Translations under genes and position numbers: made by a program
Notes under the pieces: model-generated
Told to the model about the DNA's origin: nothing
What the model saw: the letters and a program-made list of their open reading frames with translations, nothing else
The model's database searches: none
Shown here: in pieces, positions 28,301-64,000 of the stretch
Layout: the number at the start of each line of letters is the position of its first letter
How positions within the stretch are numbered: position 1 is the stretch's first letter
Assembly: GCA_038087875.1 (NCBI GenBank)
Contig: CM075987.1
Coordinates: forward strand, 21,328,001 to 21,392,000
DNA: 64,000 bases
Direction: 5' to 3'
Source of the DNA: Malacoraja senta
Taxonomy: Eukaryota

Positions 28301-31300
28301 TGAAGAAGGGTCTTGGCATTGAAGGTTCTGCACTCAGCTGGCTCCGTTCCTACCTTTCCAACCGATCCCACTTCATCTCTCTCCACAACCACACCTCTGC
28401 CACAGCCACTGTCACTCAAGGCGTTCCCCAAGGCTCCGTTCTTGGTCCCCTCCTCTTCATCATCTACATCCTCCCCCTTGGTCATATACTCCGTCACTTC
28501 AACCTGGACTTCCACTGCTATGCTGATGACACCCAGATCTATCTCAGCACCAAATCCCCCCCACCACCCCCCTCTCTCCCATATCAACTCCTGCCTGTCA
28601 GCCATCAAATCTTGGATGCAACTCAACTTCCTTAAATTAAACAGTAACAAAACAGAATTTCTCCTCATTGGCTCCAAATCAACACTCACTAAAATTAACA
28701 ACCCCACTCTCACTATTGACGGCACCACTGTCTCCCCATCTCCTCAGGCCCGCAACTTTGGCGTGATCTTTGATTCAACCCTCTCCCTTGAGCCTCACAT
28801 CCGCCATGTTGTCAAAACATCATTTTTTCACCTCTGCAACATTGCCAAAATCAGATCCTCTCTCACACCCCCCGCTGCTGAAAGACTCATCCATGCCTTC
28901 ATCTCCTCCCGACTGGACTACTGTAACTCTCTTCTCTTTGGCATCAATTCCAGCAACATCAACCGACTCCAACAGGTCCAGAACGCTGCCGCCCGACTCA
29001 TTACCCACACCAAATCCTGGCACCACATCACCCCAGTTCTCAAAGAACTTCACTGGCTTCCCATTTCCCACCGGATCACCTACAAAATCCTGGTCCTCAC
29101 CTACAAAGCCCTCAACCACTTGGCCCCCCCCTTATCTCACTGACCTCCTCTCCCCCTACCAACCCTCACGGTCCCTCAGATCCACATCAGCTGGTCTCCT
29201 CTCCACTCCGAAATCAAACCTCTGCACTTTTGGAGGCAGAGCCTTCTCCAGGGCAGCTCCCAGGCTCTGGAATTCCCTCCCACAACTGATCCGAAATTCT
29301 GAGTCCCTCACCATCTTCCAGTCCCGCCTCAAGGCCCATCTCTTCACCTCTGCATACTCTTAGTCCCATGTCCCCCTCCCCTTTGCATCTCTGTCTTACT
29401 GCTCTATTTTGTTTTGTTTTTTTGACTCTCAATGTAAAGCGACTTTGAGTCCTTGAAAAGCGCTATATAAATAAAATGTATTATTATTATTAAAACATAA
29501 CCCATTCCTTCTCTCCAGAGATGCTGCCTGTCCCGCTGAGTTACTCCAGCTTTTTGTGTCTATCTTCATTAAATTTCATTATTTTTAACTTTCTGCAGTT
29601 TGATTCCTTATTTTCACAGATAGAGGAACTAGGTGGAAGGTCAAGAGAGAAGTATCACAGTGTGCAAGAAGAAAATCATAATTTAAAGTTGAAATTGGAA
29701 ACTTTGGAAAGGTTAGTTGAGTGTAATTTAAAGGAGGTAGATTGCACTGAAATTCTTGTTGTACTGAAAGAGGAAATTATTATTCCTTCACATTTAAAAT
29801 AAAATGTATATAGCCTTATTGTACATTTTATGGGGTTGGTGTCTCAGCGAGATTTCTTACCTGTTAACAGGTTATTCCCCCTTGTCCTAATGACCTGCTC
29901 TTAAAACGGCTATTGTTTCCTTGGCTTGTTCGGCTAGGTATTGGAATTTCCGATTCATCATTCCTAACTATTCTAGATTTTTGTTTGAAACAACCCAGTT
30001 CATGATAAAATCAGTTTATTTAATTTGCTGCAGTTTCTAAACAAATCTTTTGCATCTCTGCCATGGAATGTGTCTTTAAGGAGATGGGATGGAGAGATCC
30101 AAATACCATTATGCGATGATGTAGCCTAACCTGAGCTTTGGTTGAAAATTGATAAACTTTCGACCAAATTTTAAAATCAAATTATTGCACTATCTGTCAC
30201 TTGTTAAACGTTCTTGCAAACGTTCAAAAATTATCAACCAATCATAAGTACAAAACCAATAAACAAGTGAAATGACAATATTTGGAAGAACACGGATGGG
30301 TCATGAATTAAGGGGGTGCATATCCATGAGGCCATATTTTCTTGAAGAGTCAGATCAACACTGCCAGATGTAAAATATTTCATTTCATAGTGGTATAGTC
30401 GCATCCTTGCAAAACATTTTGCAGTGTGAAATCACGACTTTGATTTTTTGGAATTGGTTAAATTCTGAACTTGTTTGGCGAATTGAACGAGATATGTTTA
30501 TATTCCAATTACATAAACGTTCTCACCAGGGTAAATTACATAATGTCAAATTTCTTAACATAATTTTCACAAAATGCTCATGGCTTGCCATGTCAAAGAC
30601 AAAGGTGGCAGCTATTTGTGCTTGGTGTGCTGCCACAAACAGTGAAGAGGTGAATGAAAAGTTAATCAGTTAATCAGTATTTGTAGAAAACATGACCAGA
30701 ATATTGGGAGAGGTCATTTTCTCATCTACTTTCACATTTTTAATGCTACAGATGGCCCTGTTGATACAGAGTTCCACCATTTAAACCTAACAATGAGAAA
30801 TTAACCCTAATCATGCTATGGGATGTCAATATACTCCTGAACAATAAGAATAGCTAAATTGGCAACAGTTTAATATCACATCTCAAAGAGTATCACTACC
30901 CCTGCCTGACTAAGCGCTCAATCCCTGGAGTGAGGTAGAAGCCTACTTTTTTTTTTTTTTAAAAGGGGGTGTGAATGGAATAATCAAAATTAAATGGTAT
31001 GTCTTGTTACAAATACAGACAAAGCAATTTGTGAACTGTAAGGATATTGCATCTTAAAGAGTGCATTGATCACTTTTGTAGGAAACTGGAAGATGTCAGT
31101 ACACATAATCGAGAGCTAACACTGGTGGTGGCACAACGGGAGGACACAATTCATCATAATCAGCAGCGTTTGGAGGAGAAATCCCGTGAGTGCTCTAGCC
31201 TAGCTCGTCAGCTGGAGACTTCCATCGATGATGCCAGGCGCCAGGTTAGTTCATTGAGATTTACTAACAGTAGGAAGGTCATTTAGCCCCAGTATATAGG

Positions 31301-33629
31301 GCATTGGTGAGATCTGCAATACAGTATTGGTCTCCTTAGTTAAGGAAAGATTAAATATATATTTTTCTCAGGAAATGCTGCCTGATCCGATGAGTTACTC
31401 CAGCATTTTGTATCTATCTTTGGTATAAACCAGCATCTGCAATTTCTTTGTTTCTAGAAGATTTTCTGGACTGGTACGTGGAATGCGTAGATAGTCTTAG
31501 AGAATGGGTTGACAGACGAGTCTTGTGTAGGAGAATGACATTAAAACGTATAACATCCTGCAGGATCTTGACAAGGTGATTATGGAGAGGATGTTCCTGT
31601 GCCTCCATTGCCCTGAGCCATTGAGGTGGTAGATGTGAGTTTTTGGAGATGCAGGTGAAGTTCTGGACTTCTACAATTCTGGACTTGTGCAGAAGACCCC
31701 TGAGCCCATAATTTTAATGTCAGATTCTTGCTATTCATTTTAAGTCTCACCACTGCTAATTTATTTTAGAACTGTTGTACTTCGTGGTCCGGTATCTGTA
31801 CCACAACAAGAATTATTAATGATGCTTTTCCAAATGACTAAATTATATTTAAAAGTTGTTTCATTGGCTTCCATCCCTCTTTTTTTAAGTGCATTATTAC
31901 AGATGCTAATGCTTATCAAAAAAATCCATTGAATTTCCTTACTCCATTGTTTTATTTTGCTGTTCTACTCACCCTTCTATGAGATGAAACAATTCCTGGT
32001 ATGCAAGACAAATCTTAAACAGGAAAAGTTTAGCTGTTATGACCATATCCATTTGTTTGTGTAGGTGGACCAATCCAGAGAGAGGGCTACTTCAAAGGAG
32101 CGGACTGCACAGAACAAAATACTGGACCTTGAGGCTCAATTGAGCAGAACAAAAACAGAATTGACTCAACTACGGCGGAGCAAAGATGATGTAGGTTGCA
32201 AGTAACACAATTCCTGTTTTGATTAAACATATAAATTTGTCCTTCAGATATTTTGAATGAGGTATCAGGGAAGGGCAATGAGATTGCTTCTGGAGAACAC
32301 TCATAGTGTAGGATAGACTTTGGGAAAAACATTGACACTTAAAACTTGCAGGTAAATGAATAAGATGGGAAAATGCATGTGTAAAATAAAATTGGAACGG
32401 TTAATCCTCTGGTTAAAATGGTGTATAAATGCATAAAAGGCAATTACAGGAAGTGTTTATTTGGATTAATCTCCAACATAGCCCTTTATGCAGAGTATGC
32501 AAAATGATTCACCCTAGGATAGAGGTGTCCGTCCAAATTGTAATCTGTTAAACTCAGCTGAATGCTGCTGGTACTTGAGATAGAGTCATGAAGTCATACA
32601 GCATGGAAACAGGCCCTTTGGCCCATATCCTTTTAAACCTTTCCTATCCAAAAGGATGTTATGTTAAATGTGTTCAAGACAATGGTGAAGTTGCACTTGT
32701 GTTTTATTTTGGTTACTCTGCTGGAGCAAAGATACCGTTAACTGGAAAAAGGGCAGAGAAGATTTATAAGGACGTTGTCAAGACATGAAGGCATGAGCAA
32801 TAGGGAGAAGTTGGACAGGCTAGGACTTTAATCATTAGAGCGCAGGTACCTTAGGGGAAACTTCTTTAGACAGATGGTGATGGGTATGCCAGATGAGGTA
32901 GTTGAGGCAGGGTCAATAACAACATTTAAAAGAGATTTGGGAAGATACATGGAACAGAGTGGTTCAGAGGGAAATGGACCAAACGTGGGCAAATAGGATA
33001 AACTTGGATGGGACATCTTGTCGACAAGGATGAGTTGTGCCTAAGGGCTGCTTCATGCTATATGACTGATTCAATCCTATCTAGATCTCTGATCAGTACA
33101 CTCTCGCCCTACGATAGGAAGGAGAAAATGATTAGGCTTGCTACCACTGTTTATTATCCATTCATTGTCATTGGAAATTTACATGATAAGGAAGGAGAGT
33201 CTAAAGGCTGGATTGCTTTAACAGGCACTTAACCAAAGCTTACAGATAATGGTTCAAAGGAATGGTTCAAATAATGAACATTTGGGGGTGGTACAATGGG
33301 ACATCCTGGAAAATACAGGTGAGGAACAAGGGAATTAGTAAAGGGAGAGCATTTTGAGCTACTTGACCATGGAGAAACCACTGTGGTACTTCTGTGAAGC
33401 TGTTTATACTGAATGGTAAAGGCTTTCCAATATTACTGTTGAAAGTATCTTGTCAAATCCAATTATTTCTTAGGCTGAGAGGCGTTTCCAGAGTCGCTTA
33501 GAAGATTTGAAGGATCGCCTGGAGCAGTCGGAATGCACTAACCGCAGCATGCATAACTATGTCCAGTTCCTCAAATCCTCGTATGCCAACGTCTTTGGTG
33601 AAACTGCAATAACAAGTTCTCCAGTTTAA
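10306..33629 (+). CDS. ODF2: Outer dense fiber protein 2 / cenexin, long isoform, 815 aa, 19 coding exons
   Basis: Exons with GT-AG boundaries and consistent phases: 10306-10407, 11468-11587, 13110-13280, 13689-13876, 14477-14603, 16054-16185, 16408-16482, 17645-17716, 20377-20493, 22351-22536, 22895-23004, 23769-23904, 25873-25983, 26419-26523, 27160-27318, 29620-29711, 31082-31244, 32065-32190, 33474-33629 (2448 nt). Hallmarks: LHVHVDETTPVHVHVKK, KTKVPWIPPGK, LSDLSTDD, KLVEAEMDAAAAAKQV, HLQGQLRSKEAENNR, YVQFLKSSYANVFG. Confidence 0.96.
12378..12678 (-). mobile_element. HE1-like V-SINE, full length
   Basis: Head GGGGCAGCACGGTGGTGGAGC on the minus strand, V-domain, (TAAAC)n-like tail. Confidence 0.85.
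12694..12817 (+). pseudogene. Intronic partial duplicate of ODF2 coding exon 4
   Basis: Gap-free 124-nt copy of 13748-13871 with 12 mismatches by eye (about 90%). Encodes IEEKEEELAEVTKELVLTEHKNELLQR. Confidence 0.85.
14982..15091. repeat. Perfect 50-bp inverted repeat with 10-nt loop
   Basis: 14982-15031 is the exact reverse complement of 15042-15091. Confidence 0.95.
16537..16570 (+). ncRNA. Minimal type I hammerhead ribozyme motif (Penelope-like terminus), representative copy
   Basis: GGT-CTGAAGA-A-GGGT(CTCA)ACCC-GAAA-CA-TC-ACC: conserved core, 4-bp stem II, 3-bp stem I. Activity is not demonstrated. Confidence 0.55.
17783..18149 (-). mobile_element. L2-clade LINE 3' end
   Basis: Closely similar to the reverse complement of 29093-29490; (ATA)n tail. 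Confidence 0.88.
18873..19645 (+). mobile_element. GC-rich non-autonomous retroposon with LINE-type 3' stem-loop
   Basis: CpG-rich block inside an AT-rich intron, ending in hairpin TTCAGACC-GAAA-GGTCTGAA then TGACAAATAAA, a Rex1/Babar-like tail. Confidence 0.55.
21066..22030 (-). mobile_element. Rex1/Babar-clade LINE, 5'-truncated
   Basis: Minus ORF DFRK...KFLGVHI...KKAQQRLHFLR...FYRGAIESIL...WYGSC...LLPSGKRYRS...SFFPQAIRLLN; (TTTAC)n tail. Confidence 0.9.
24290..24770 (+). mobile_element. Degenerate Rex1/Babar LINE 3' fragment
   Basis: Decayed similarity to the C-terminal region of the 21066-22030 element. Confidence 0.45.
24785..25490 (-). mobile_element. CR1 LINE internal fragment
   Basis: Minus-strand DKTPGHDGIY...LLREA and RPVSLTSVVGKLL motifs. 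Confidence 0.8.
27928..28314 (+). mobile_element. Penelope-like pseudo-LTR fragments with hammerhead motifs
   Basis: CTGAAGAAGGTTCTCGACCCGAAACGTC at 27933-27960. A second copy starts at 28300, is cut by an L2 insertion and resumes at 29492-29567. Confidence 0.75.
28313..29491 (+). mobile_element. L2-clade LINE, RT C-terminal half with frameshifts
   Basis: GVPQGSVLGPLLF, YADDTQIY, LKLNSNKTE, SRLDYCNSLL, HITPVLKELHWLP, AFSRAAPRLWNSLP; (TAT)n tail. Confidence 0.92.
32690..33072 (+). mobile_element. Degenerate CR1 3' end
   Basis: Similar to 3430-3805 (gaggtagttgaggcagg...aacatttaaaaga...tatgact). Confidence 0.65.
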
Positions 33630-41249: not shown

Positions 41250-43860
41250 TGACAATAGACAATAGGTGCAGGAGTCGGCCATTCGAGCCAGCACCGCCAT
41301 TCACTGTGGTCATGGCTGATGCATGGCAGATGAAGTTTAATGTGGATAAATGGGAGGTTATCCACTTTGGTATCAAAAACAAGAAGGCAGATTACTATCT
41401 AAATGGTGTCAAGTTGGGAAAAGGGGAAGTACAATGGGATCTGGGGGTCCTTGTTCATCAGTCTATGAAAGTAAGCATGCAGGTACAGCAGGCAGTGAAG
41501 CAAGCGAATGGCATGTTGGCCTTTATAACAAGAGGAGTCGAGTATAGGAGCAAAGAGATCCTTCTGCAGTTTTACAGGGCCCTAGTGAGACCACACCTGG
41601 AGTATTGTATGCAGTTTTGGGCCCCTAATTTGAGAAAGGACATTCTTGCGATTGAGGGAGTTTTACAAGGTTAATTCCCGGGATGGCGGGACTGTCATAT
41701 ACTGAGAGAATGGAGCGGCTGGGCTTGTATACTCTGGAGTATAGAAGGATGAAGGGGATCTTATTGAAACATATAAGATTATTAAGGGTTTGGACACGGT
41801 AGAGGCAGGAAACATGTTCCAGATGTTGGGGGCATCCAGAACCAGGTGCCACAATTTAAGAATAAGGGGTAAGCCATTTAGAACGGAGACGAGGAAACAC
41901 TTTTTCACACAGAGAGTTGTGAGTCTGTGGAATTCTCTGCCTCAGAGGGCGGTGGAGGCCGGTTCTCTGGATACTTTCAAGAGAGCTCGATAGGGCTCTT
42001 TAAGATAGCGGAGTCAGGGGTTATGGGGAGCAGGCTGGGGCGGGGTACTGATTGGGGATGATCAGCCATGATCACGTTGAATGGCAGTGCTGGCTCAAAG
42101 GGCCGAATGGCCTACTCCTGCACCTATTGTCTATTGACCTCTTTGCTCCTATATTCAACTCCTCTTGTTATGAAGGCCAACATGCCATTAGCCTTCTTCA
42201 CTGCCTGCTGTACCTGCATGCTTACTTTCAGTGAGTAATGAACAAGGACCCCCAGATCTCTTTGTACTTCCCCTTTTCCCAACTTGACACCATTCAGATA
42301 ATCTGCCTTCCTGCTTTTGCCACCAAAGTGGATAACCTCATTTATCAACATTAAACTGCATCTGCCATGCATCTGCCCACTCACCCAACCAATCCAAGTC
42401 ACCCTGCATCCTCATAGCATCGTCCTCACAGTTCACACTGCCACCCAGCTTTGTGTCATCTGCAAATTTGCTAATGTTACTTTGAATCCCTTCACCTAAA
42501 TCATTAATGTATATTGTAAATAGCTGCAGTCCCAGCACCGAGCCTTGCGGTACCCCATTAGTCGCTGCCTGCCATTCTGAAAGCGACCCGTTAATCCCTA
42601 CTCTTTGTTTCCTGCCTGCCAAACAATTTACTATCCATGCCAGTACCCTACCCCCAATACCATGTGTTCCAATGTTGCCCACTAATCTCCTATGTGGGAC
42701 CATATCAAATGCTTTCTGAAAGTCCAGGTACACTACATCCACTGGCTCTCCCTTGTCCATTTTCCTATTTACATCCTCAGAAAATTCCAGAAAATTAGTC
42801 AAGCATGATTTCCCCTTCGTAAATCCATGCTGACTCGGACCGATCCTGTTACTGCTGTCCAAATGTGCGGCTATTTCATCTGTTATAATTTACTGCAGCA
42901 TCTTCCCCACCACCGATGTCAGGCTAACTGGTCTATAATTCCATTTTTTCTCTCCTGCCTTTCTTAAAAAATAGGATAACATTAACTACCCTCCAAACCA
43001 CAGGAACTGATCCTGAATCTGTAGAACATTGGCAACCCAAATCTCGCTGTACCAATTGGTACAGTGACAATAAATGTAAACTTGAACTTGAACTTGAAAT
43101 GATCACCAATTCGTCCACGATTTCTAGAGCCACTTCCTTAAGTACACTGGGATGCAGACCATCAGGCCCTGGGGATTTATCAGCCTTCAGTCGCATCAGT
43201 CTACCCAACATCATTTCCTACCGATTGTGAATTTCCTTCAGTTCCTCCATCACCCTAGATCCTCCGGCCACCAGTACATCAGGGAAATTGTTTGTGTCTT
43301 CCTTAGTGAAGACGGATACAAAGTACCTGTTCAACTTGTCTGCCATTTCCTTGTTCCCCATCATAAATTCACCTGTTTCAGTCTTCAAGGGTCCAACTTT
43401 GGTCTTAACTATTCTTTTCCTCTTCACATACGTAAAGAAGCTTTTACTATCCTCCTTTATATTCTTGGCTAGCTTACCTTCGTACCTGATCTTTTCTCCC
43501 CGTATTGCCTTTTCAGTTATCTTCTGTTGCTCTTTAAATCCCAATCCTCTGGCTTCCCACTCATCTTTGCTATGTTATACTTCTTCTCTTTTATTTTTAT
43601 ACTGTCCTTGACTTCCTTTGTCAGCCACGGTCACCCCTTACTCCCCTTGGAATCTTTCTTCCTCTTTGGAATGAACTGATCCTGTACCTTCTGTATTATT
43701 CCCAGAAATACCTGCCATTGTTTTTCCACTGTCATCCCTGCTAGGGTATCTTTCCAATCAACTTTGGCCAGCTCCTCCCTCATGGCTCCATTTTTCCCCT
43801 TTGTTCAACTGTAATACTGATACTTCCGATGTTCCCTTCTCCCTCTCAAATTGTAGATTT
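41250..43860. mobile_element. Rearranged CR1 LINE complex (+ strand 3' part 41315-42135; - strand RT part 42137-43860)
   Basis: RT motifs QHGFTKGKSCLTN, YLDFQKAFD, GVPQGSVLG, KFADDTKLG on minus; WQMKFNVDK, ALVRPHLEYC, FFTQRVVSLWNSLP on plus. Confidence 0.92.
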
Positions 43861-44249: not shown

Positions 44250-44496
44250 TGATACTGGGAACATCCTAATGTATACTGCAGTCTTCTTGTATACATTTAA
44301 AACATTGCGGCAAACTTTGGTAATCTATCAAGGGTTAAATAACCCAATTTTCAAACCCCACCTCTTGCATCACACTGATGCCCTTTAAAAGGCTTTGGTT
44401 TCTTGCAAACCATCATTCTAGCCTTTCAGGTGACGTTTCCCAGTCTAGTGAAGTGAAGAATCTAAATACGGAAACCTTGTTCCGTGCACGCCTGAT
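44250..44496 (+). promoter_or_regulatory. Candidate promoter/5' UTR of the lipocalin gene
   Basis: TATA-like TTTAAAA (44384-44390) about 110 nt upstream of the ATG; TTGCATCA (44365), CTGGGAA (44255), near-palindrome GGGTTAAATAACCC (44332). Short motifs only; an upstream non-coding exon is also possible. Confidence 0.35.
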
Positions 44497-47400
44497 ATGA
44501 GGCTCAAGATGTTGACCCTTTACATCGTGGCTGCTTTCACCATCTCTGTGGTCTCAAGTGCAGCCGTGCCCCTCATGAACTGCACAGCAAAGGACAGTAA
44601 TGTATCCATGTTTGATATGTTTGAGGTGAGTTGAAAATTACAGTAATAGATCACTGTGTACATTTAACCAGAGGCTACCTTGTAGAGTTAGTGATAAGGG
44701 AATAGCTTTTGTGGCAAGATTCATGGCTTTGACTTTCTGATAGTGATGCTGAGCATTAAATATTATAGACAGTGTGATACAAACAGTATAGTAAACAGGA
44801 AATAGTGAGATGTGGACAGTTGGTGAAGAAGAATAACTGCCCATTAGGGTAATTCTAATGTATTTCTGGAAAAATAAACTAATTTTGATGAAATTTAAAT
44901 GGTTTCAAAGATTAGTCATTGAGGGACAACAGGGTGAGGAGAGGAGATTACAGGTTGCAAATGAATAGAAGATACAATAGAACAGATGAGGGTATGTTGA
45001 GATTGATGAATAAGCATAAAGCAGCAACAGCATTGTGCTTTTTATTCACATGGTAGAAATTTCATGAATTAACTTTATACTTGTTGGGGAGCAGGATTTT
45101 TGAATGTGCAGATCTTATCAGAAGTGCGTAATTGAATCACAGAATTGTTAATCTATTGGATTTTGTCTGTTTACAAACCTGTGAATCAATTGGCATATTT
45201 TACTATGTTAAAGATGTTATGTAAATGTAAGGTTCTTCAATTGTTGATTGTGATAATGTTTGGTTATGCCACTAGATGGTAGCTTACCCCATATTTTGGA
45301 AGCAGGTCAGGGATTTGAGTGGGAAATCAAATGCAAGATCTGTGAAAGAAAGGCAGGAAATGCTGGCGGAGAGAGCAGTCACTTTACGTGCAAGGCTGGT
45401 AACCCTTTGTTAGAGCTGAAGATTGAGAAATTACGTTTTTTATTGTGCAGGAAGGAACTGCAGATGCTGGTTTACACCGAAAATAGATACAAAATGCTGG
45501 AGTAACTCAGTGGGTCAGGCAGCATCTCTGGAGAGAAGAAATAGGTGATGTTTCGGGTCGAGACCCTTCTTCAGACTGCTTAGCAGGGGGGAGTAGGGAC
45601 AGGAGGAGATGCGGAAAGGCACGGACACAAAGAGAGTGAGTGGGAGAGATATTCTATTCAACCGATCAAACTTTTTTCTGAGCTGAGTAAGTCATGGAGT
45701 CATTGTGCTGTACAGCACGGAAACAGGCCCTTTAGAGTGAACAATGGAGCCGGAGGGGGGAGAAAAAAAATACAATGAGTAAACTGTGTGGGCTAGGCTA
45801 CGAGAAACACTGGACTCTGTGTGGACGTCCCATATACTGCTCACTACTCATGAGCCAAACCCCAAACTGTCCAAACTGACGTGAACAAAAAAAGGAGAAA
45901 ATTCAGAAACTGTACCAACTTCTAAAATACAAAATCATTTGACCTGAACTTGTAAATATATTCATGACACATTAACAATGCACCACTTATTAATAATCAG
46001 CTAGCAGGCTCTGGAGTTCATAAATATTATGTTGTGGGGGGGGGTAGATCAGCAAAATTTGCTGGTTGACTCGTATCACTCCAGACTCACTCCAATATTA
46101 GCCTTATGCTAATAATACCATACCCTAAACCTCTAATCTGTTTGCCAACTTGCTGGATTTGCATCTTAAGTGCTATTAAACTTGTATTAGAAAGTTAGGG
46201 CTGTTAAGTAAGTGTGCAAGAAACTGATTTTATTATTCTTCCTTGTATTACATCCCTCTCTCTGGATGAGATTTTTCTTATTGATTCTCCCTGTTTCTAT
46301 GCTTGTATTTCACTTACTTTGCCACGAGCAATGCTGCTCCAACTAAGATTTTGTTCAATATCTTAAATTAAAGCAGGTTTATTTCTATTTTGCATGTTTG
46401 ATAAGATTCCCATTAAAGGCTCCTTGGGAAAGGAAATAATTTTGTATTGCTCCGCATTTCAATATAAAACAGAGAACCTGTGCTAGCATGTTGGTCAAAT
46501 CTTTGCCAAAGTCTATGTGAGGCCAATGGGGAGGAATTTCTGAGACAGTCCCCAGCAAGCTCTTTTCAGAGGTACATCTGTGTATTTCATTGTTCGTCAT
46601 TCCTATTTTCTCCATAAGCCTTTTGGTGTTTGGCATACCATCGCAATTGCTTCAGCAGAAAATCATGATGGACTGAACAGCTTAACAATTTCTTTGAATG
46701 ATGAGAAGAACCTCTACCTCCAGATTGATTGGTAAGTTGATAAATTTATAGCAAAGTTTACAGAATAAAATTAATTACTCCGAGCATCATATGCTATTTA
46801 TCAGTATATTCAGAACCATGGTTTCCAAACAGAAGTGGGTGGGGTGAAATTTCCATAGGACATCAAAGGGATCCAATGTAAATCTTACCAGAATATTGTT
46901 TTGAGTAAAGTAGTTCCACATGGTTAACATGACATTTTCTACAGCATAATGTAGCAAGCACTTAGGTCTTTGAGTTCTGTGATCTACTGAACTTTGAGTG
47001 AATGATTTGTTAACTTTGCATTTTCTGTATTGATCAACACAACAGGAAGGGAGTATGCACAAAAATAGAAAAAATATTTTCCAGTACTTCTGAGGGTGCT
47101 AATGAAGGTTGGTGCAATGTTTTATTATATGATATATATTTCTTTGGGGTAAGCATTGAGAACATGACTGGAGCAGTCTTCCAATTAGAAAATTCCTGGG
47201 TGGCTCAGCTCAGGGACAATGGGTCTATCTGAACTGAGGGCAGCATCCCCTGCAGGGTTTGGTGAATGCTTTGCTGCCCATATCTTACTGAAACATCAAG
47301 TCCTACCTGCTCACTGACCTACATCACTCCCTCTGGCAATGCCTTGCTTTTAAATTTATTTTCCTTTTTTAGAAGTCCCTCCCTGACTTCCCCTCCTATC

Positions 47401-50400
47401 CATCTGTGCACATGTTCAAACCTACAACCTTCTTAGATATCTCCACTCTTCTGGTTCTGGCTTCTTATGAAGCTGTTGTATTTATCCCTCCTTGACCAGG
47501 CCTTGAGTGGCCTACACTCTAAGCACAGCAATTCCCTTCAAAAGGTTCCCCACCCTTTTCTCTTTTAAAATACTCTTTACAACTGACCAAGCCTTTTGTC
47601 AGGTCGCAGAATATAATCTTCGGCTTAATTATCACTCGGGGAGGTTTTTTGAGATGATGTGCTACTTTAAAAGTGCTATATAAATGCAAACTGTTTTCAT
47701 TTCCATTCCTTGCTCTCAGTTCAATTAACATACACCGCGACATATGTTATTGATACTATGCTTAACATTTGCATCTCATAATTGTTTGTGTTTTTTCCCC
47801 ACCAAATCTATCTGAGTCTGTAAGATGACTGTTACAACAAGAGTTTGCTGCAAATGTGCCATGTTCCAATCCAGGAATTGGGCATGCATCAAGATTTTTG
47901 AATTGAAAGGACTTTGGTGTCCTTTGATTGGGATGTTAAATTTAGGTCTAATTTGCTTGTTCCGTTGGACCTTCAAAGGTCTGTGTATCATCTCAAAGAT
48001 CTGTGCACCTTCCCAGTGATCCGGTCCTCCCTCCACCACTACTCGATAGAACTTTGGCTAAGTGGTAGCACCCTTTGCCTCCCTGGCTTTACTTAACTCT
48101 TCCTTTCTTGGATCAACACTTTTGCCTATGAGTTAAAGCACTATACGTTTGAGTTTCATTCTAGAGAAATAAATGGATGCCCAGGCTTCACACGAAGGAA
48201 TTGTTCACTGTTGGAGGAGTTGTTTTTCGATGAAATGTTAAAGTGAGCGTACATAAGAAATCTCACAGCATTAATTAAACACATGTCTGAAGTGTTGTGA
48301 TATTAATTATCCTTTAACAAACATTTATCTGCTGATTATCACATTTCGTTTAGAGATACAGCGCGGAAACAGGCCCTTCGGCCTACCGAGCCCACACCGA
48401 CCAGCGATCCCGGCACACTAACACTATCCTACACACACTGGAGACAATTTACATTTATACCAGGCCAATTAACCTACAAATCTGTATGTCTTTGCATTCA
48501 TGTGGGAGGAAACTGAAGATCTCGGAGAAAACCCACGCAGGTCACGGGAAGAACATACAAACTCCGCACAGACAAGCACCCGTAGTTAGGAATGAACCTG
48601 GGTCTCTGGCACTGTAACTCTACCGCTATGCCACCGTGCCACCCACTGACCCCATTTGTAGGAGCTCCGTTATTTAATGGGAACATCCAGAGATGATTAG
48701 GGGTGCTGTTTGAATGCAAACTTTCCCATTCACCCCCATCCCCCTTTTCAACCTTATGTAATACACTGGGTTCCTTCCAGGCAGTTAGCTTGTCAATGTG
48801 CTTGTGTTACAGAATCTTCAAGTGCTTCAGATCCTCACTTGGGACAGTGACAACTGTCACCACCACTTCCTCCAAGACTTAATTCTCCTTGTATTTTGTC
48901 TCTCCCAATCTTTCCTCCTACATTTCTGAGTCATTGGCTACTAAATTATATGGCAGGGTATTTTCATTCTAAGTCTGTACCCAGTTGGTTGTACTCTTGA
49001 CTCAGTTGCAAGGTACCAATTCCATTCTCAGAGACAAGCATAAAGTATTTCAAAAGTGAAGTGGTTTGAGATATTCTAAAGCCATGATAAGTGCTGTGTA
49101 AATTTTTTTTCCTTAACTTCTTCAGACAAATGGGATTACATAGCTATAAACGGGAATACTGAATATGTTATACTCCATCACCACCACCATAGAAAATGTG
49201 CAACCAACATCTTCCTCTTACTTGGTAAGAAGCAATTAGAAAAAAATTACAATTTATTATGTAATCTGCAGATGATATATGTAAGGGTAGCAAAGAACTG
49301 CCAATGCTGGTTTAAATCGGAGATAGACACAAAATGCTGGAGTAACTCAGCAGGACAGGCAGCTTCTCTTGAGAGAAGGAATGAGTGACGTTTTGGGTCG
49401 AGACCCTTCTTCAGATGATATATATAATATATTTAGCACAGCCTTAATGATTTCTTTATCCAAGTTGTAAAAGGAATGGTCCCTTTCCAGGGAGTTGATA
49501 ACATGTTTAACTAAATACTATTTGTTGCTCAAATCCTTGAACCTGATTAGTGCTGATGGGGTTAATTGAGGAAAAAATCCCTCAGAGGATTACTTCATGT
49601 TGGAGACGAATATTAACTATCTAACACATTCCATAGATGTAAGCTCATATAAAAATTTGCTGAGCATATCTAGACTAGTACTATAGCCTTTCAATTCAAT
49701 ACCCTTGTTTGTGCTGATCCACATTTTTCCAATGGTAATTTATCAGCACCTTGATTTTGAAATTCACATTCCTGCTCCTTTCAAAGCTCCATTGCTCACT
49801 GCTTTTGGAACATCCTATATACCTCCAACCCCAGCTAGAACTCTGCATCTCCCACTGCCTTCACCCCACCACAAAGCTCAAACTTAAGTCACCATGGTCC
49901 TAAGTTCAGTTTGTTCACTCGATCTTAAAGTCTACCCAGAGCCTAACTGTGTCAATTTCTGTCTGATTGCATTTCTCTCATGTTATCTTCATCCAGTTAA
50001 GGAACTATAAAAATTTAAACTGTTCTATTCCTGCACAGGCAGCTATTAACCCTCTCTGTTTACATTACATGTGAGTTTAATTCTCAAATCAAATTATTCT
50101 CCACTGATAACATAATATTGCATTCAAACTCAGTTTATTGAGAAATATAACACAACTTGTCATTATAGAGAATAGGAGTGGGAAAGCAGATAATTGAGGA
50201 CTTTGTACTTCTGGTATTACATGTGTAGTATATCAATATCCTCTGCAAAGAAATGAAAGATGATTTCCACAAGGTTTGAAATACAGATAACAAAATATAT
50301 TAATGAACCTCATTTGTCCTGCAAAATCTCGGGATGATGTTTGTAAAGTGGTATTTAGTGGATGCACAATATGCATTAAATTCATAAACTCTGTCATCAA

Positions 50401-51962
50401 TTAACAGCCATTTGTCTTTGCAGGAAAAAATCCAACAGCAAGTGTTGACATCATGGAAAGTTTCAAGAGGCTGGTAGATTGTTCAAATATTCCGGATCTC
50501 ACAATCTACACACTACCTCAGGAAGATGGTAAAAACAAGATTTCTATGAAAAGACATAAATGCTTTTGGGAATACTTGTCGACAGATTTAATCACCTTGC
50601 TATTGAATTGAGAATAATACTTTGGGAAAACGTTAAATCACATTGTTTTCATGTTTTGGTAGGTGAGATTTTAAGTGCCGTTACACAGCAAAACTTTGAG
50701 AACTCGGAGAGATGTGATAAAGGTCTTCACAGTACTAAAATATAAGGTTTCAATAAATTAGGTCACAAATTTGAAATCTGCAGTCCTTGCCTGAGATTAG
50801 AGGTGATATAAAACTTCAACATAAAAATAATACTCAGCAGGACAGACTTTGTGTTTTGCTCGTAAATGAGTAAGGACTATTGCATTTCTTGGAAAGTGCT
50901 GTTCTGGGTTGGGGGTTCCCCAGTGATAAAACAGAAGCTGTTGAAGTCAGCAATGAAACAACAGAGCAAAACAGATAGATTAATGTTCACCAAAAAATCT
51001 GTATTGGTTATACATTTATTGCATCTACTTTTCTTTAAAGGAATCTGCAAGACCAGCACACCACAGGTTGGTATATATATATTTTTTAAATTGCTTTAGA
51101 ACATTTAGCTAAATTCAGAACTTGTTATTAACAAACTGCAAAAATGAATATTACACTTTGTTTAAAAAATAGCATACTGTATTAATGAAACAAAGCTTTG
51201 TTCTGCACATTCAAGAAAATTAGAAAAATACTGTAGACTGCTGTTTGAATTATATTGTTCCATTTTTTATCCTCTCAAAGACCATCTTGACTTTGCAACT
51301 AATACTGCCACTTGAAGATATTTGCAACATTAGTATATTAACTGAGAATTTAACATGCTGCACAAAGTAAAACTCGGTAATTAATGACAATTGCATTATA
51401 GTTATGATATAATTTGAAACAATCTCTCAGGCCCAGAATGGGAAGGATGCAACGTACTCAGTCTCATTCTTGCACGTAATCATAGTCGAGTCAAGTTTAT
51501 TTGTCACATACACATACGAGATGTGCAGTTGTTAAAGATCTAAAACATATCACATTTTGGTTCATTTTTCCAACATTGCCCCTTTCCCTTTGTATTTCGC
51601 TTTCCACACCTAATTTGATTTTATGATTTACTTCTCCATTTTATCTTTTTTTCCCTTTCTGTATCCTTAAATCTAATTGTTGGTGCTATTATACCAGCTT
51701 GTACCCATAAATTAACATCCGAAAAAGAACTTCACTTAAAGGATGCAGAAAAAAATCTAGTTAACATTGTGAGGTGACAAAAAACATTGATGTTCCACGT
51801 TCTAGTTTGTTGTTATAGATTCTTGAGAGTCTGCCCAAGTTTGAAAGATTTGCTCTGTCGCAAGCGAGTTACGAACAATTGCACCCTTTGACCTTTTTTA
51901 AAATTAATTAGTTCTAGGTTCTCTCAGATCTTAGTTACAGTGTTTTTATATTACAGAAATAA
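44497..51962 (+). CDS. Secreted lipocalin, alpha-1-acid glycoprotein/ApoM-like cysteine pattern, about 179 aa
   Basis: Exons 44497-44625, 46619-46731, 47046-47107, 49126-49224, 50424-50528, 51041-51066 and tentatively 51957-51962. Intron phases 0,2,1,1,1 are the canonical vertebrate lipocalin pattern. Protein: MRLKMLTLYIVAAFTISVVSSAAVPLMNCTAKDSNVSMFDMFE/PFGVWHTIAIASAENHDGLNSLTISLNDEKNLYLQIDW/KGVCTKIEKIFSSTSEGANED/KWDYIAINGNTEYVILHHHHHRKCATNIFLLLG/KNPTASVDIMESFKRLVDCSNIPDLTIYTLPQEDG/ICKTSTPQ/K*. Signal peptide, GxW (SCR1) at the start of exon 2, exon-3 Cys and C-terminal Cys. AATAAA at 52146. The last splice is uncertain. Confidence 0.82.
45447..45577 (-). mobile_element. Penelope-like terminus with hammerhead motif in lipocalin intron 1
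   Basis: Reverse complement reads GT-CTGAAGA-A-GGGTCTCGACCC-GAAACATC-AC. Confidence 0.75.
48353..48642 (-). mobile_element. HE1-like V-SINE, full length
   Basis: Head GGGTGGCACGGTGGCATAGCGGTAGAG on the minus strand, V-domain, tail. Confidence 0.85.
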
Positions 51963-52651
51963 AGGAGATCAATTGGAACAAGAGAACGCTTGAGCAAATC
52001 GACCACAACTCACCATTTTGGAACCAATCTACGTTCAAGGATTCTGCAACAAAATATGAAATTATAGCTTTCATTTTCAGTTTATTTAGAGACACAAGTG
52101 TGTTAAGAAATCTTGTGATTCTATACAGATTTTTGCTTTTTTAGCAATAAAAATTTGCAAACAATATTTACATAAAATATAATAATGATTGTAACAATTA
52201 TACTAGCAAAGAGGACAAAGATTTTTCTGTAACAGCAGAGTTTGGCAAACTTGTATTTAAACATTAATTGATCATTAATTAACTTGAAAACATCTAAATA
52301 TAATACTACAGTTCATATTAAATGATGTGAGTTATTATTTGTTGCAAGTTGAGGCTGAGTATTATCAACAGGTGCATGGTATACTTCATCCTCTGATCAT
52401 GTTTCCAGCTATCATCCTTACCTTGTACAGTAGCTGTTGGTACCAAACAATGAGACAAAATACTAATAACTTGATTAACTCAGCCACATGAAAATTGAAC
52501 CCTCATAAAGAAATGCAATAATATTTGCAGCTAATACTTGATAACTCCCAAATGAATCTTTGCACTAGAATTAACAATCCTACGTGGTCACTGAGTCATA
52601 CAGCATGGAAACAGACCCTTCGACCCATTGAGTTCACACCAACCATTGATC

Positions 52652-57104: not shown

Positions 57105-57294
57105 TGCCACTAGATGGGCCAAAAGGCCTGTTTCCATACTATATGACTATATACAGATCACTGTCCTATTTGGAGTGCTTCCTTGCATTAATATTGTGTC
57201 TCTTTCACATCAGTTAAGGACTCCGTGCTCATTTTATACTCTTTATGAGCCACACACAAAGATAAAATAACCTCTCCTTCCATCCATGCAAAGC

Positions 57295-57439
57295 CTGCCC
57301 TGCCTGGTCTCCATGGCGACACGTGGGCGGGCCATAACCCGGAACTGGAAATGGCTGTGGGACGATTTTTTTAATTGTTGGTCGGGGGATAAGACGGTTT
57401 TAGGTTGTTTGACCGAAAAGTTACCTCGGGCGGGATATC
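57295..57439 (+). promoter_or_regulatory. GLE1 CpG promoter/5' UTR
   Basis: CpG-rich. X-box-like GTCTCCATGGCGAC (57307-57320), E-box CACGTG (57320-57325), GC box GGGCGGG, ETS-like AACCCGGAA and YY1-like AAATGGC directly upstream of the GLE1 ATG. Confidence 0.7.
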
Positions 57440-60018
57440 ATGCCCGCCGAGGATAAACGCTGGGAGACTTTGCAGGCGTTGCGCAACTCGAAGAAAGGGC
57501 GGCTGACCTACGACACGAGCTGGCTGGAGGACGGGGAGGTGAGTCCGCCCAGCATCTGTCTCCCGCCTGGGCCCCAACATCAGCCCCTCCAAGCCTAATA
57601 CAATAATTTTTATTTTTTGTGATAGACCAGTATCTGGAGGCCTGACTTTCCCCAAGAAAGAGGGTCTCAACTAGAAAAGTAGAAACTGTTCACTCCTTCC
57701 CCGGATGCTTCCTGACCCACTGAGGCTCTTCTATATTTTGTGTTTTGCTCAGGAGAGGTTTAGTGTTTAGGTTTATGATTGTCACATGAACCAAGGTGAA
57801 GAGGAAAGCATGTTAGACAGTCAAATCATATATTATACACAAATACAATCAAGCCAAACTCGTGCAATAGGTAGAGCAAAGAAAAAGATTCGGGGTGCAG
57901 AATAGAGTTCTCTGCGTTATAAGGTGACAATATATTATTAGAACAACTAGAAATGAAGCTATATTTATAAATAGAATAGAGATTTAAAGTAGTAGGGTGA
58001 TTGCATCAGAGGCCAGCAGATCTTCCTCTGGGACCATCATTGCAAAGAACCGCCATACTGCGGTGCCAGATTCCAGCATCTACACTTTCTTGTGTCTTCT
58101 AAATTCTGCTTACTTGGTATTACAGTTATTGATTTAGTGCATTAGTGATTTTTTAGTATCTGTGTGTTTGTAAGCCTGTTAAGCTGTCCCAAGTAAGAAT
58201 TTCATTATTTTGTTGTTGGTACATGTTAATAATTAAACACTCTTGATTTCACTCTTGACTTGTTTCCTCCCACCCCACACACCCCAAACATAGATTTTTT
58301 GTTTAAAGATGCAGCATGGAAACAGGCCCTTAGGCTTGCCGAGTCCATGCTGACCTTTGATCACCTGTTCACACTAGTTCTATGTTGTCCCACTTTCTCA
58401 TCCACTCTCTACACATTAGTGGCAATTTTAGAGGCCAATGTGGTCTTTGGGATGTGGGAGGAAACCAGAGAAAACCCATGCAGTCACAGCCAGAACATGC
58501 AAACTTGAAACACAGACCAGCCAAGGTCAGGATTGGACGTGCGACACTGCCGTTGTGAGGCAGCATCTCTATCAGCTGCGCCACTGTGCCGAATTTCTTT
58601 TTTTTTCATCCCAATTTCCCTTCAGTTGAATGTAAAAAAAATAAAAATTTGCAGATGTTAACAATTTGATGTCAAAGTAGAAATCCCTGGAAGTACTCGG
58701 CAGATCAGGCAGCATATGTGGAAAGAGAAACTGGGTAATGTTTTAGTTTGGAGACCCTTATTCGGTCTTTGACCAGATGCGTTAACTCTTTCTCCTAACA
58801 CAGATGTTTCCTGATCTGCTGAGTGTTTCCAGCATTTTCTCTTTCCTAGCCTACTTTTGGTGGATTGCGTGTTCCCTTCTGAGCTTCTGTGTTAGATTAC
58901 CCAAAAGCCTCTTTCCTTCCCCCCCCCCCCCCACCCCCCTTTTTTGATTCTGAGGTTTTGGGGAGAAGGCAGGAGAATGGGGTTAGGAGGGAGAGATAGA
59001 TCAGCTATGATTGAATGGCAGAGTAGACTTGATGGGCCGAATGGGCTAATTCTACTCCTATCACTTATGACCTTTGGAATTCCTTGTCTGGACTGAACAG
59101 CCCTCTTTTGGGATGCCTTGTTCTTTTTTTCAAACATATCTGTTGTGGTCAAATGTTATTCTCTTTAATCAGCATAACAACTTCAACGCATCTGATGCCA
59201 TTAATATTTTCCATTCCTGTTATTGAAATCAACAACAGGAAATTGCTTCAGTATTCTTGAAACACAGTTCATACAAAGTTTTGATACCTCGATCTGGTTC
59301 TACACTGCTCCCCACTCGCACATCCCCCCCCCCCCTATCCTTGTGAACCTACTTTGAAGAGGATCTTTGATAATTCAATATATGCACACGGTTTGAATGT
59401 GTCTGTACTGTACTTCACGAACTCTGAAATATCTCCACTTATATCACTCGGGCATTGGCTTGTAGAAATACAGGTAGTAGTTACAGGATGAGTGGGTGAA
59501 AATTTAAAACTCGGGTGCTCTGAATGCACAGGGAATGATGGATCCCTGGGATTTTCTGGTTGTGGAGACCAGATCACAGGGTAAAGATTAAAACGTGTAT
59601 TTCTTCTTGTTGCTATAATCCTAATAAAATGTGCACCGTGTTATAGACTTGAGGAGAAAGCGAATATGTTTTTGAGATAGAGCTGGGCAGGTTTAAAAAT
59701 TGAATGTTCTGCAGGTCATTGTGCATTTCGATAAAAAAGTCTTTCTTGGATCAAGTTATTTCACAGCTCTTAAATTTTATGTCATGCAAAGCCCTATTTT
59801 TTTTCTAGGATATTTTGGAACAATGTCAATCATCACCCAAGCTTTCTGTAACCTCAGCATGGGTACTGGACCACTTGTCACGACCCGAAACTCAGTCCAA
59901 CGCCACAGAGAATTTGACACCTCTGGTCAAGTGTCTTGCTGGAAACGACCAATTACCAGAGAAGTCTGTTCCTTCTCCAGATCCAAGAACCGAAGAGGAA
60001 AATAATAACAATGTGCAG
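57440..60018 (+). CDS. GLE1: mRNA export factor GLE1, coding exons 1-2; gene continues beyond the window
   Basis: Exon 1 57440-57538 [33 protein letters not shown]|gtgagt; exon 2 59809-60018 [23 protein letters not shown]...NVQ|gttagt. Matches the recalled human N-terminus [22 protein letters not shown]...[22 protein letters not shown]. ODF2-GLE1 adjacency is conserved in human. Confidence 0.93.
58308..58590 (-). mobile_element. HE1-like V-SINE in GLE1 intron 1
   Basis: Same SINE body as the other copies. Confidence 0.8.
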
Positions 60019-60110
60019 GTTAGTTCTCATTCATTAGTGTTCATTTTTTTCTGTAAATACAGAATAATAGATATTGTTGATCACTGACTTTGTTTAACTG
60101 AAACACTAAC

Positions 60111-61855: not shown

Positions 61856-64000
61856 TTTTTTAAATATTTTTATTTTATTAGAAGTACAATTGTATACAAT
61901 CATATTTTCATAATACATTTTATGTACAGCTTCTTATTTTTTTAAATTTTTATAATAAAGAAGAAAAAGAAAAAGAAGTTAGATAATGAAAAATAGAAAA
62001 ATGTGAGATATATAGTGTGTGGAAAAGAAAAATAGAGAGTGAAAGAAGAAAGTTAAAGAATAGAAAATAGGAAAAAGAGAATAAAAGAAGAAAAGGGAAG
62101 AAAAAGAAAAAAGAAGTAAGGAGATCTTATTTATAATCTTGACCATCCCTCGCCCAGTCACGAGTTAGCTTTTACAATTGTGTTGCACCATATGATTCCA
62201 AAAAGACGACAAATGGAGACCAACTCGTTGTGAATTGGTCAAATTTATCTATTAGGAGGAATCGCATTTCCTCAAGATGTGCGGTGTCCAACATACTTCC
62301 AATCCACATTTTGAGCGTTGGTATTGGTGTATTTTTCCAAAATTTCAATATTAATTTTTTTGCTATTATTAAACCATAATTAAAAAATAATTTTTGAGAT
62401 GGATTCAATTTATTCCCATCTTCCATTACCCCAAATATAATCAATTCATTATTAGGTTCCATTTTTATCTTAAATAATTTTGTGAATATTTTGAAAATAT
62501 CACTCCAAAATCTATAAAGTTTTATACAGGAAACAAACGAGTGTGTTATAGTTGCATCTTGGGTTAAACATTTATCGCAAGTGGGGGATATATTTGGGTA
62601 AAATTTATTTAATCTTGTTTTTGAGTAATATAATCTATGTAAAATTTTAAATTGAATTAGATTATGTCTTGCATTAATCGAACATTTGTGAATGTATGTC
62701 AAATACTTTTCCCATGTAACCTTCGTAATTTTTTCATTAATTCCCGTTCCCACTCTTCTCTAATTACCTCTGTCGCAGGTAAATCTATATTTAAAATACT
62801 ATTATATAAATATGATATTAATTTTTGTGTATCAGCTTTAATATTCATTACTACTTCCAATAAATCAGGAATTATTTTTTGATATCCTTGTATGTATGTC
62901 TTCAAGAAATTTCAAATCTGAAAATATTTAAAATAATGATTGTTTTTCAATTTAAATTTTAATTGTAATTGTTGAAATGATAGTAAATCTCCCATTTCAT
63001 ACATGTCCCCGATCCTTTTAATTCCTAAACTTTCCCATTGATTATATATTTTGTCCATAAGAGATGGTTTAAATAAAGGATTATTTGCTATCGGTGTTAA
63101 CAATGATAGGTTTCTTAATTTTAAGGATAATTTTATTTGTTTCCATATTCTTATTGTATCTTGTATAATTGGGTTCTTCTTATATATTGTATTGTTCATT
63201 TTTTTCGGGGAGAAGAGGATCGTTCCTATATTACAAGGGTAACAATCCTCTTTCTCCATTTTTATCCATTCTGTCTGTTGGGTTGAACTATCCAACCAAT
63301 AAATTATATTCTTAATATTTATTCGGGAGTGAAAGTCCCCCGACATCTTTTGGTTTACATAAGTGTTCTTTTTTAATTCTATGTGATTTATAGTCCCAAA
63401 CAAAATTAGTGATATTAGAGTTTAATTTAGAAAAAAAATATTTTGGTACATATACTGGTATAGACTGAAATAGGTATAATAACTGTGGTAGAAAGATCAT
63501 TTTTATAGCATTTATTCTACCTATTAATGATAAAGGAAGTGTTTTCTAAAATTTAATCATTATATTAAGTTTATTTATTAAAGGTATAAAATTGGCATTG
63601 AATAAAGCTTTGTTTTCTAGTAATCTGAATACCCAGATATTTAAATTTTTCTGTTGCTATTTTAAAGGGGAACTTCAGTAAGTGTGTGGATTCTTGAGGT
63701 TTTAACGTCATGATTTCGCTTTTGTTCCAATTTATTCTATATCCAGAAAAGGACCCAAATTCCTCTATTAAGTTTAATAAATTTGGTATGCTCGTTTCTG
63801 AGTTTGTTATATATAACAGAATATCGTCTGCATATAATGAAATTTTATTATTTGAATCCCTAGTATTATAACCCTGAATATTCGGATGACTTCTTATACT
63901 TTCAGCCAAAGGTTCTATCATAAGGGCAAATAGCAGGGGTGATAAAGCACATCCCTGCCTATTACCCCTTGATAATTGAAATTTTTGAGATAACATACTA
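61856..64000 (-). mobile_element. L1-clade LINE ORF2 3' part, frameshifted, antisense in GLE1 intron 2
   Basis: RGNRQGCALSPLLF, LYADDIL, SGYRINWNKS, KYLGI, GGLSLP, C-terminal CDKC...HSFVSC; A-rich tail near 61856-61880. Confidence 0.92.

Follow-up and report, generated by a model that had tools for sequence, protein, structure and literature searches.

The window analysed here is a stretch of 64,000 nucleotides (nt) from the skate Malacoraja senta (NCBI GenBank assembly GCA_038087875.1, contig CM075987.1, positions 21,328,001 to 21,392,000 of the forward strand). A sequence-only reading of this DNA had placed a lipocalin gene between ODF2 and GLE1, and such a gene indeed lies there, downstream of the last mapped exons of ODF2 and upstream of GLE1, whose 5' region maps from about 57.1-57.4 kb on. 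Within the 64-kb window it is present in one copy. Very probably this is a single-copy, TATA-driven gene of seven exons for the 179-amino-acid (aa) precursor of a secreted kernel lipocalin, which belongs to an orthogroup of cartilaginous fishes.

The six exons proposed from the letters alone were all found where they had been placed, with GT-AG borders and joined in frame, and on assembling them the intron phases 0,2,1,1,1 were reproduced. They had been described as missing from the list of open reading frames (ORFs), and indeed none of them makes an ORF of 60 aa of its own from ATG, GTG or TTG. However, the exon list was one short: position 51066 splices to a seventh exon beginning at 51957, and a sixth intron, of phase 0, lies one codon before the stop. 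The series 0,2,1,1,1 is reportedly the norm of the lipocalin family, as Sanchez et al. are said to have found in 2003; apart from the extra phase-0 intron the gene thus has the vertebrate lipocalin architecture that had been claimed for it. A read-through of exon 6 would give a product of 188 aa; this reading was rejected and the microexon splice from 51066 to 51957 preferred, since transcript contigs carry the letters of exon 6 between exon 5 and 51953/51957. Spliced in this way the product has 179 aa, and exon 6 is present in the Rhinoraja RefSeq model as well. The exons and the other features of the locus are collected in Table 1.

Table 1. Features of the lipocalin locus in the window (position 1 is the first letter of the 64,000-nt stretch).
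Feature	Position	Strand	Remarks
Exon 1	44415..44625	+	5' untranslated region (UTR) 44415-44496, coding sequence (CDS) 44497-44625 (43 codons); next intron phase 0
Exon 1, content		+	signal peptide, Cys29, sequons N28 and N35; from the translation
Exon 2	46619..46731	+	113 nt; GxW (G46-V-W48), strand A, invariant GLNS loop; next intron phase 2
Exon 3	47046..47107	+	62 nt; Cys85, most variable stretch of the protein; next intron phase 1
Exon 4	49126..49224	+	99 nt; TEY motif (structurally conserved region 2, SCR2), His run H119-H123, Cys126; next intron phase 1
Exon 5	50424..50528	+	105 nt; G135-K136 (SCR3), C-terminal helix, Cys154, strand I; next intron phase 1
Exon 6	51041..51066	+	26-nt microexon with Cys172; next intron phase 0
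Exon 7	51957..52311	+	Lys179, TAA stop 51960-51962, 3' UTR
TATA-like box	44384..44392	+	TTTAAAAGG (TTTAAAA); read from the sequence, 31 nt upstream of the mapped start
ODF2, last mapped exons	31074..32187	+	tblastn with the ODF2-derived N-terminus of the whale-shark model P0008: 73-85% identity, E 1e-25 and 2e-17
GLE1, 5' part	57149..60110	+	colinear, 87-93% identity, with the Rhinoraja locus L001 from 20318
RVT_1 reverse-transcriptase fragment	42341-42889	-	E 2e-20; upstream of the lipocalin gene
zf-RVT fragment	62175-62759	-	in the AT-rich GLE1 intron region
Reverse-transcriptase-like ORF (putative)	63574-63999	-	in the AT-rich GLE1 intron region

For the transcript evidence, Logan contigs of four runs (X1-X4) from three related skates (organisms A-C) were placed on the locus. 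Every junction predicted from the sequence is used in spliced contigs of related skates. Contigs of X1-X4 skip introns 1, 3 and 4 at GT..AG; the joints are 44623->46617 in X1 (intron 1, GT..AG), 46729->47044 and 47105->49124 in X2-X4 (introns 2 and 3), and 49223->50423 (intron 4, GT..AG). Where exon 2 is joined to exon 3 the cut was placed 2 nt off, yet all 62 nt of exon 3 are in the record. After exon 5, 24 letters of the 26-nt stretch 51041-51066 appear in the contigs between 50526 and 51953/51957. Two full-length transcript contigs of 986 nt come from another skate (L004 and L005; runs SRR13269331 and SRR13269355). Their alignment with the window falls into exactly seven blocks, and the exon 6 block of L004 covers 51040-51066. 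The depth of the exons is high, up to about 1,500-3,200 in run X1, and that of the introns is low except at interspersed repeats. This shows that the gene is transcribed in three related skates, with a very high contig depth in one run.

Copies of repeats resembling short interspersed nuclear elements (SINEs), of one or more kinds, lie in introns 1, 3 and 4 (45450-45580, 48344-48640 and 49320-49415). Their word depth reaches 10^4-10^6 in every run, and almost every spurious joint in the read tables stems from them. One low-depth contig (run X3, organism C) joins exon 2 not to exon 1 but to an alternative 5' exon at 45550-45681, which is partly SINE-derived. It was rejected as coding, because on translation by hand exon 2 is not in frame with the one ATG of this stretch; the joint would stem from either an artefact of the assembly or a non-coding isoform.

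Transcription starts at about 44415, from where L004 and L005 align. The 20 nt at the 5' ends of these contigs, which abut 44415, are presumably the template-switch oligonucleotide, and for this reason 44415 is taken as the cap site. The TATA-like box upstream of it may well be the promoter element. Further 5' of the box, at 44330-44380, an inverted repeat GGTTA-AA-TAACC and a C/EBP-ATF-like element TTGCATCA (TGATGCAA on the opposite strand) were read by eye. These might be control sites of a liver or stress type. At the 3' side the transcripts pass the AATAAA at 52146 and end at or beyond 52311, by an ATTAAA at 52317.

The gene had been called hidden and possibly undescribed, which did not hold, as RefSeq and UniProt already list its orthologues as uncharacterised proteins with a lipocalin domain. 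An exhaustive HMMER search with exon 2 found P0001 (95% identity, E 1.2e-14); the other matches, P0002 and P0003, are bacterial Ig-repeat and repeat proteins and were dismissed as chance. The 90% cluster of P0001 contains XP_078282573.1 (P0004), the 'uncharacterized protein LOC144608542' of Rhinoraja longicauda, which has 179 aa and is 91.6% identical to the window product. Projected onto the Rhinoraja locus (L001), the seven exons reproduce this protein exactly. Profile searches added orthologues from Chiloscyllium punctatum (bamboo shark, chiPu_0013021, 50% identity), Callorhinchus milii (elephant fish, XP_007898435.1, 44%) and Rhincodon typus (whale shark, LOC125486389, 53%), with E values from 1e-32 to 1e-45. 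No member outside cartilaginous fishes was found in sequence and profile searches of 5.8 billion proteins, which were word-index searches and as such prone to miss remote relatives. Among the AlphaFold-DB clusters only the bamboo-shark orthologue matches closely (47%); all others have at most 21% identity. The orthogroup is so far known only from cartilaginous fishes, i. e. skates, bamboo shark, whale shark and elephant fish. A literature search found no paper on the lipocalin orthogroup between ODF2 and GLE1, on XP_007898435 or on the SRR runs.

The whale-shark RefSeq model LOC125486389 (P0008, 243 aa) is a chimera, in which the first ~100 residues come from 3' exons of ODF2 and are followed by the lipocalin exons from exon 2 onward. 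The true exon 1 of the whale shark lies at L003 22204-22332 (Rhincodon typus NC_063359.1; the model spans L003 10001-44365). It is skipped by the model and encodes the signal peptide and the N-terminal Cys, here in the context DCP.

The claim of a lipocalin with a signal peptide was borne out, as to the family by Pfam. The window protein was submitted as exon pieces and the full-length test was done with the Rhinoraja orthologue P0004, which matches the Lipocalin family PF00061 with 35.5 bits (cut-off 23) over positions 2-145 of the 145 in the profile. All six family members match PF00061. Among the single-exon submissions the only match, a weak one, came from exon 5 (E 0.013, profile 112-145 of 145); the same exon alone gave matches to pentatricopeptide (PPR) repeats in the PDB, which were rejected as spurious. 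On a hidden Markov model (HMM) of the family the whole window protein scores 324 bits. The sequence-only reading had found no TDY motif and taken the protein for an outlier lipocalin. However, T113-E114-Y115 is in register with the TDY of alpha-2u-globulin, and a sister skate has TDY itself, which is present in P0001 and P0005; G135-K136 (GR in sharks) corresponds to GR in the third conserved motif. When the six-sequence HMM was compared with Can f 6, alpha-2u-globulin and OBP3, the pairs GxW/GDW, 'dGiCtki'/'NGKCTKI', 'nTEY'/'kTDY' and 'llGK'/'LYGR' were all in register. Thus all three conserved motifs are present, which makes the protein a kernel lipocalin and no outlier.

An AlphaFold2 (AF2) model of the mature protein from six sequences has a predicted local distance difference test score (pLDDT) of 71 and a predicted template-modelling score (pTM) of 0.72, and contains strands A-D and F-H, the C-terminal helix and strand I; with the signal peptide included the model was poor (pLDDT 55). 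All of the 50 Foldseek rows shown are lipocalins. The model supports a calycin fold, with a predicted eight-stranded barrel followed by the C-terminal helix and strand I. In VIA-align the Z scores of the model were 12.8 for Ex-FABP, 12.5 for C8 gamma, 12.4 for alpha-1-microglobulin, 12.0 for alpha-1-acid glycoprotein (AGP), 11.8 for PTGDS, 11.7 for siderocalin, 10.0 for RBP4 and 9.0 for ApoM (rank 35). The predicted structure does not tell the subfamily.

The translated product begins with a hydrophobic N-terminus of the signal type, which would be cut at about A23/V24. The mature protein has about 156 aa, a mass of 17.6 kDa and an isoelectric point (pI) of 5.4. Its cysteines are at positions 29, 85, 126, 154 and 172. 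Four of them, C29, C85, C154 and C172, had been proposed to form two bridges; they are conserved in skates, sharks and the chimaera and are compatible with the pairs C29-C154 and C85-C172. By analogy, C85-C172 would be the universal lipocalin bridge and C29-C154 would connect the N-terminus to the helix end; C126 is probably a free thiol. The predicted sequons N28 (NCT) and N35 (NVS) were confirmed in the translation. Another sequon, N94-x-S96, is shared without exception by six relatives that range from chimaera to skate, and has been lost in the window by an Asn-to-Ser exchange (AAT to AGT) in codon 94 (47083-47085).

The ratio of nonsynonymous to synonymous substitutions (dN/dS) is 0.25 against Rhinoraja (dS 0.16) and 0.58 against L004, and the identity is 93.9% in the CDS versus 86-91% in long non-coding blocks. 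This shows purifying but fairly relaxed selection. The fastest-evolving part is exon 3, with 84% identity to L004, and it coincides with the poorly modelled region of strand E. The His run (49174-49190), HHHHH in the window, reads HHHNH, HHHDH (organism A), HHYNH, HHYKH or DHYNR in relatives, and H120 is its only invariant His. Organisms B and C have an in-frame insertion of 6 nt (CCATCA) after 49174 plus two substitutions, with two extra His.

The position of the gene was checked on both sides, upstream for ODF2 in the window, the bamboo shark and the whale shark, and downstream for GLE1 in the window and Rhinoraja. In the bamboo shark the ODF2 gene ends about 10 kb upstream of the orthologue, and next to the orthologues of the sharks the ODF2 genes match Pfam ODF2_N and ODF2_C. 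In Rhinoraja, GLE1 lies 4.3 kb downstream of the lipocalin gene on the same strand; from L001 20318 on, the record calls a 693-aa GLE1 product carrying PF07817. Pfam searches with the flanking ORFs of the window gave reverse-transcriptase fragments only, neither ODF2 nor GLE1. The fragments on the minus strand (Table 1) are remnants of retroelements that flank the lipocalin gene.

The most likely interpretation is that the protein is an abundant secreted carrier, which would be stabilised by the two disulfides and whose barrel could hold a small hydrophobic ligand in the extracellular fluid. According to lipocalin topology, the His-rich end of strand G and the G-H loop (HH[H/Y]xH, then K-C) would be situated at the cavity mouth. 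In alpha-1-microglobulin, the free Cys34 and His123 (PMC8389303) offer the basis for an analogy, by which the His-rich G-H region and the probably free Cys126 of the skate protein might also bind metal or haem or take part in redox chemistry. As the His stretch is variable, this is a minority bet and rather doubtful. Several points weigh against the proposed gene and carrier as set out here. No RNA run of Malacoraja senta itself was found to hold the last exon, and the RNA evidence comes from related species. The pairing of the disulfides is based on conservation and analogy, and the N-terminus has low confidence in the model. Strand E (mature residues 71-80) was not confidently modelled, with low pLDDT at the exon 3 stretch. 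The penta-His is specific to the species of the window and the whale shark has no Cys126, both of which weaken the reading of a conserved metal site.

Among solved structures the best sequence matches are MUP, alpha-2u-globulin, Can f 6 and OBP3, in which GxW, the Cys ('DGICTKI' versus 'NGKCTKI'), T(D/E)Y and G(K/R) are in register with the skate protein. These MUP-type kernel lipocalins are of similar size, have a signal peptide as well and share the seven-exon layout with the skate gene. However, the identity is only about 20%, and they do not have the extra conserved N-terminal Cys, the helix-end Cys, the His-rich strand G and the probably free Cys126. Orthology is excluded, since the MUP-type proteins are mammalian newcomers (PMC8420045). 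AMBP differs by its Kunitz fusion, and compared with the group of alpha-1-microglobulin, C8 gamma, Ex-FABP, siderocalin and PTGDS the skate protein has its probable free Cys in another loop. No equivalent of a siderophore-binding triad or of a catalytic Cys65 was established in the skate protein. We know of no extra N-terminal disulfide in AMBP, C8 gamma, Ex-FABP/siderocalin or PTGDS. Human AGP carries five glycans; the window protein has two sequons.

Three placements of the orthogroup in the lipocalin tree have to be weighed. The sequence-only reading had assigned the gene to the orosomucoid (ORM)/ApoM group, and of this claim the cysteine pattern and the embedding and shape neighbours lean that way, whereas the motifs, the PDB profiles and the Pfam ApoM family do not. 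The gene would then be a cartilaginous-fish member of the clade of ApoM, orosomucoid and the fish tributyltin (TBT)- and toxin-binding proteins, i. e. an ancient ORM-like plasma carrier with a bearing on how ORM arose, which we consider quite unlikely. The residue pairings of AGP, ApoM and RBP4 run from the N-terminus to behind the helix and from strand D to the C-terminus. The positions of the conserved N-terminal and helix-end Cys of the skate protein, and of its two Cys in strand D and at the C-terminus, fit the two disulfides of AGP (PMC8217824) and two of the three that ApoM, like RBP4, possesses (PMC8420045). The full pattern of ApoM and RBP4, three disulfides from six cysteines, is not found, as the skate protein has five cysteines and the whale-shark protein lacks C126. 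By ESM-Atlas features an 'Apolipoprotein M' cluster takes one of the top two places (score 0.93) in three divergent orthologues, and in the elephant fish a PSTBP1-like cluster takes the third, but NGAL-like, LCN10, Can f 2 and AMBP clusters are in a near-tie with them. By shape, two models have an 'alpha-1-acid glycoprotein 1-like' cluster as their nearest neighbour, and ApoM (2yg2_B) is second in Foldseek; in VIA-align, however, ApoM reaches only rank 35 and AGP ties with Ex-FABP, C8 gamma, alpha-1-microglobulin and PTGDS. The Pfam ApoM family PF11032 is matched weakly by two of the six members (best E 0.0063), with 14 bits against a cut-off of 22 and over the C-terminal 47 residues only. Neither the six-sequence profile nor the terminal pieces (44 aa from the C-terminus, 41 aa from the N-terminus) matched ORM or ApoM in the PDB at E<=10, and AGP chains are present in the library, as they appear in the fold searches. 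With the profile, Can f 6 (4e-9), alpha-2u-globulin (2e-5), OBP3, darcin, MUPs and AMBP (0.004) were found and none of ORM, ApoM, LCN2 or PTGDS at E<=10; OBP2A was also among the matches of the profile or terminal-piece searches. ORM and APOM have six exons in contrast to the seven of the skate gene with its terminal microexon, and their chromosomal context differs from that of the skate gene. AGP, an outlier, keeps one of the three motifs (PMC8217824), whereas the skate protein has all three. On the other hand, ApoM has been reported missing from cartilaginous fish (PMC8420045), which leaves a gap that the gene could fill.

A second placement is with the PTGDS-derived group on the chromosome equivalent to human 9q34 (PTGDS, C8G, AMBP, LCN2/Ex-FABP and others), as an old positional relative, possibly of LCN2, that gained the extra N-terminal disulfide. 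This is quite conceivable and falls only a little short of being probable. Many 9q34 lipocalins have seven exons with a short penultimate exon, as here, and human LCN2 lies about 0.3 Mb from ODF2. To our knowledge, PTGDS, LCN2, C8G and AMBP have no pair of an N-terminal Cys and a helix Cys, which speaks against this placement. The kernel motifs are present and the best sequence matches are kernel lipocalins; NGAL-like and LCN10 clusters score 0.92-0.93 in ESM-Atlas, but structure and feature scores tie statistically with the clusters of the AGP/ApoM type. Moreover, LCN2 itself is seen as a mammalian newcomer (PMC8420045). Finally, jawed vertebrates may have had a seventh lipocalin orthogroup, branching early and neither ApoM/ORM nor PTGDS-derived, which bony vertebrates lost and which the gene would represent; this seems somewhat unlikely to us. 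The restriction to cartilaginous fishes in the protein searches, two profile searches included, and in the AlphaFold-DB clusters points in this direction. However, word-index searches overlook distant relatives, and the exhaustive search covered only the 37 aa of exon 2. The catalogue of PMC8420045 lists other C. milii lipocalins (AMBP, APOD, PTGDS and RBP4 among them), and the Ensembl id of PTGDS_Cmil is three numbers from that of AMBP_Cmil (15302 versus 15299). As far as id numbers can tell, this suggests that PTGDS_Cmil is at a different locus from the skate-type lipocalin. All three placements, on the ApoM/ORM side, on the PTGDS/LCN2/C8G/AMBP side or on a branch of its own, remain candidates.

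The early vertebrate lipocalin catalogue comprises six genes, of which all but APOM are found in cartilaginous fish, and ORM is derived there from APOM in terrestrial vertebrates (PMC8420045). It is improbable, in our estimate, that the lipocalin between ODF2 and GLE1 is the missing gene of the ApoM/ORM clade in cartilaginous fishes, located on a 9q34-type chromosome and not in a region of the major histocompatibility complex (MHC) type. If it were, ORM-like lipocalins with two disulfides would predate the split of bony and cartilaginous fishes, and ORM and ApoM could be paralogues from whole-genome duplication, with ORM not being a tetrapod offshoot of ApoM as proposed (PMC8420045). In other respects the gene is an ordinary member of a known family, uncharacterised but already predicted by annotation pipelines. 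As a kernel lipocalin of cartilaginous fishes, it marks the ODF2-GLE1 locus as the site of a further lipocalin orthogroup, which is highly transcribed, has kept its position in the skates and sharks whose flanks were checked and is apparently not included in the catalogue (PMC8420045). Placing it in the lipocalin tree would test the origin of the ApoM/ORM and the PTGDS-derived groups as well as a loss at the ODF2-GLE1 locus in bony vertebrates.

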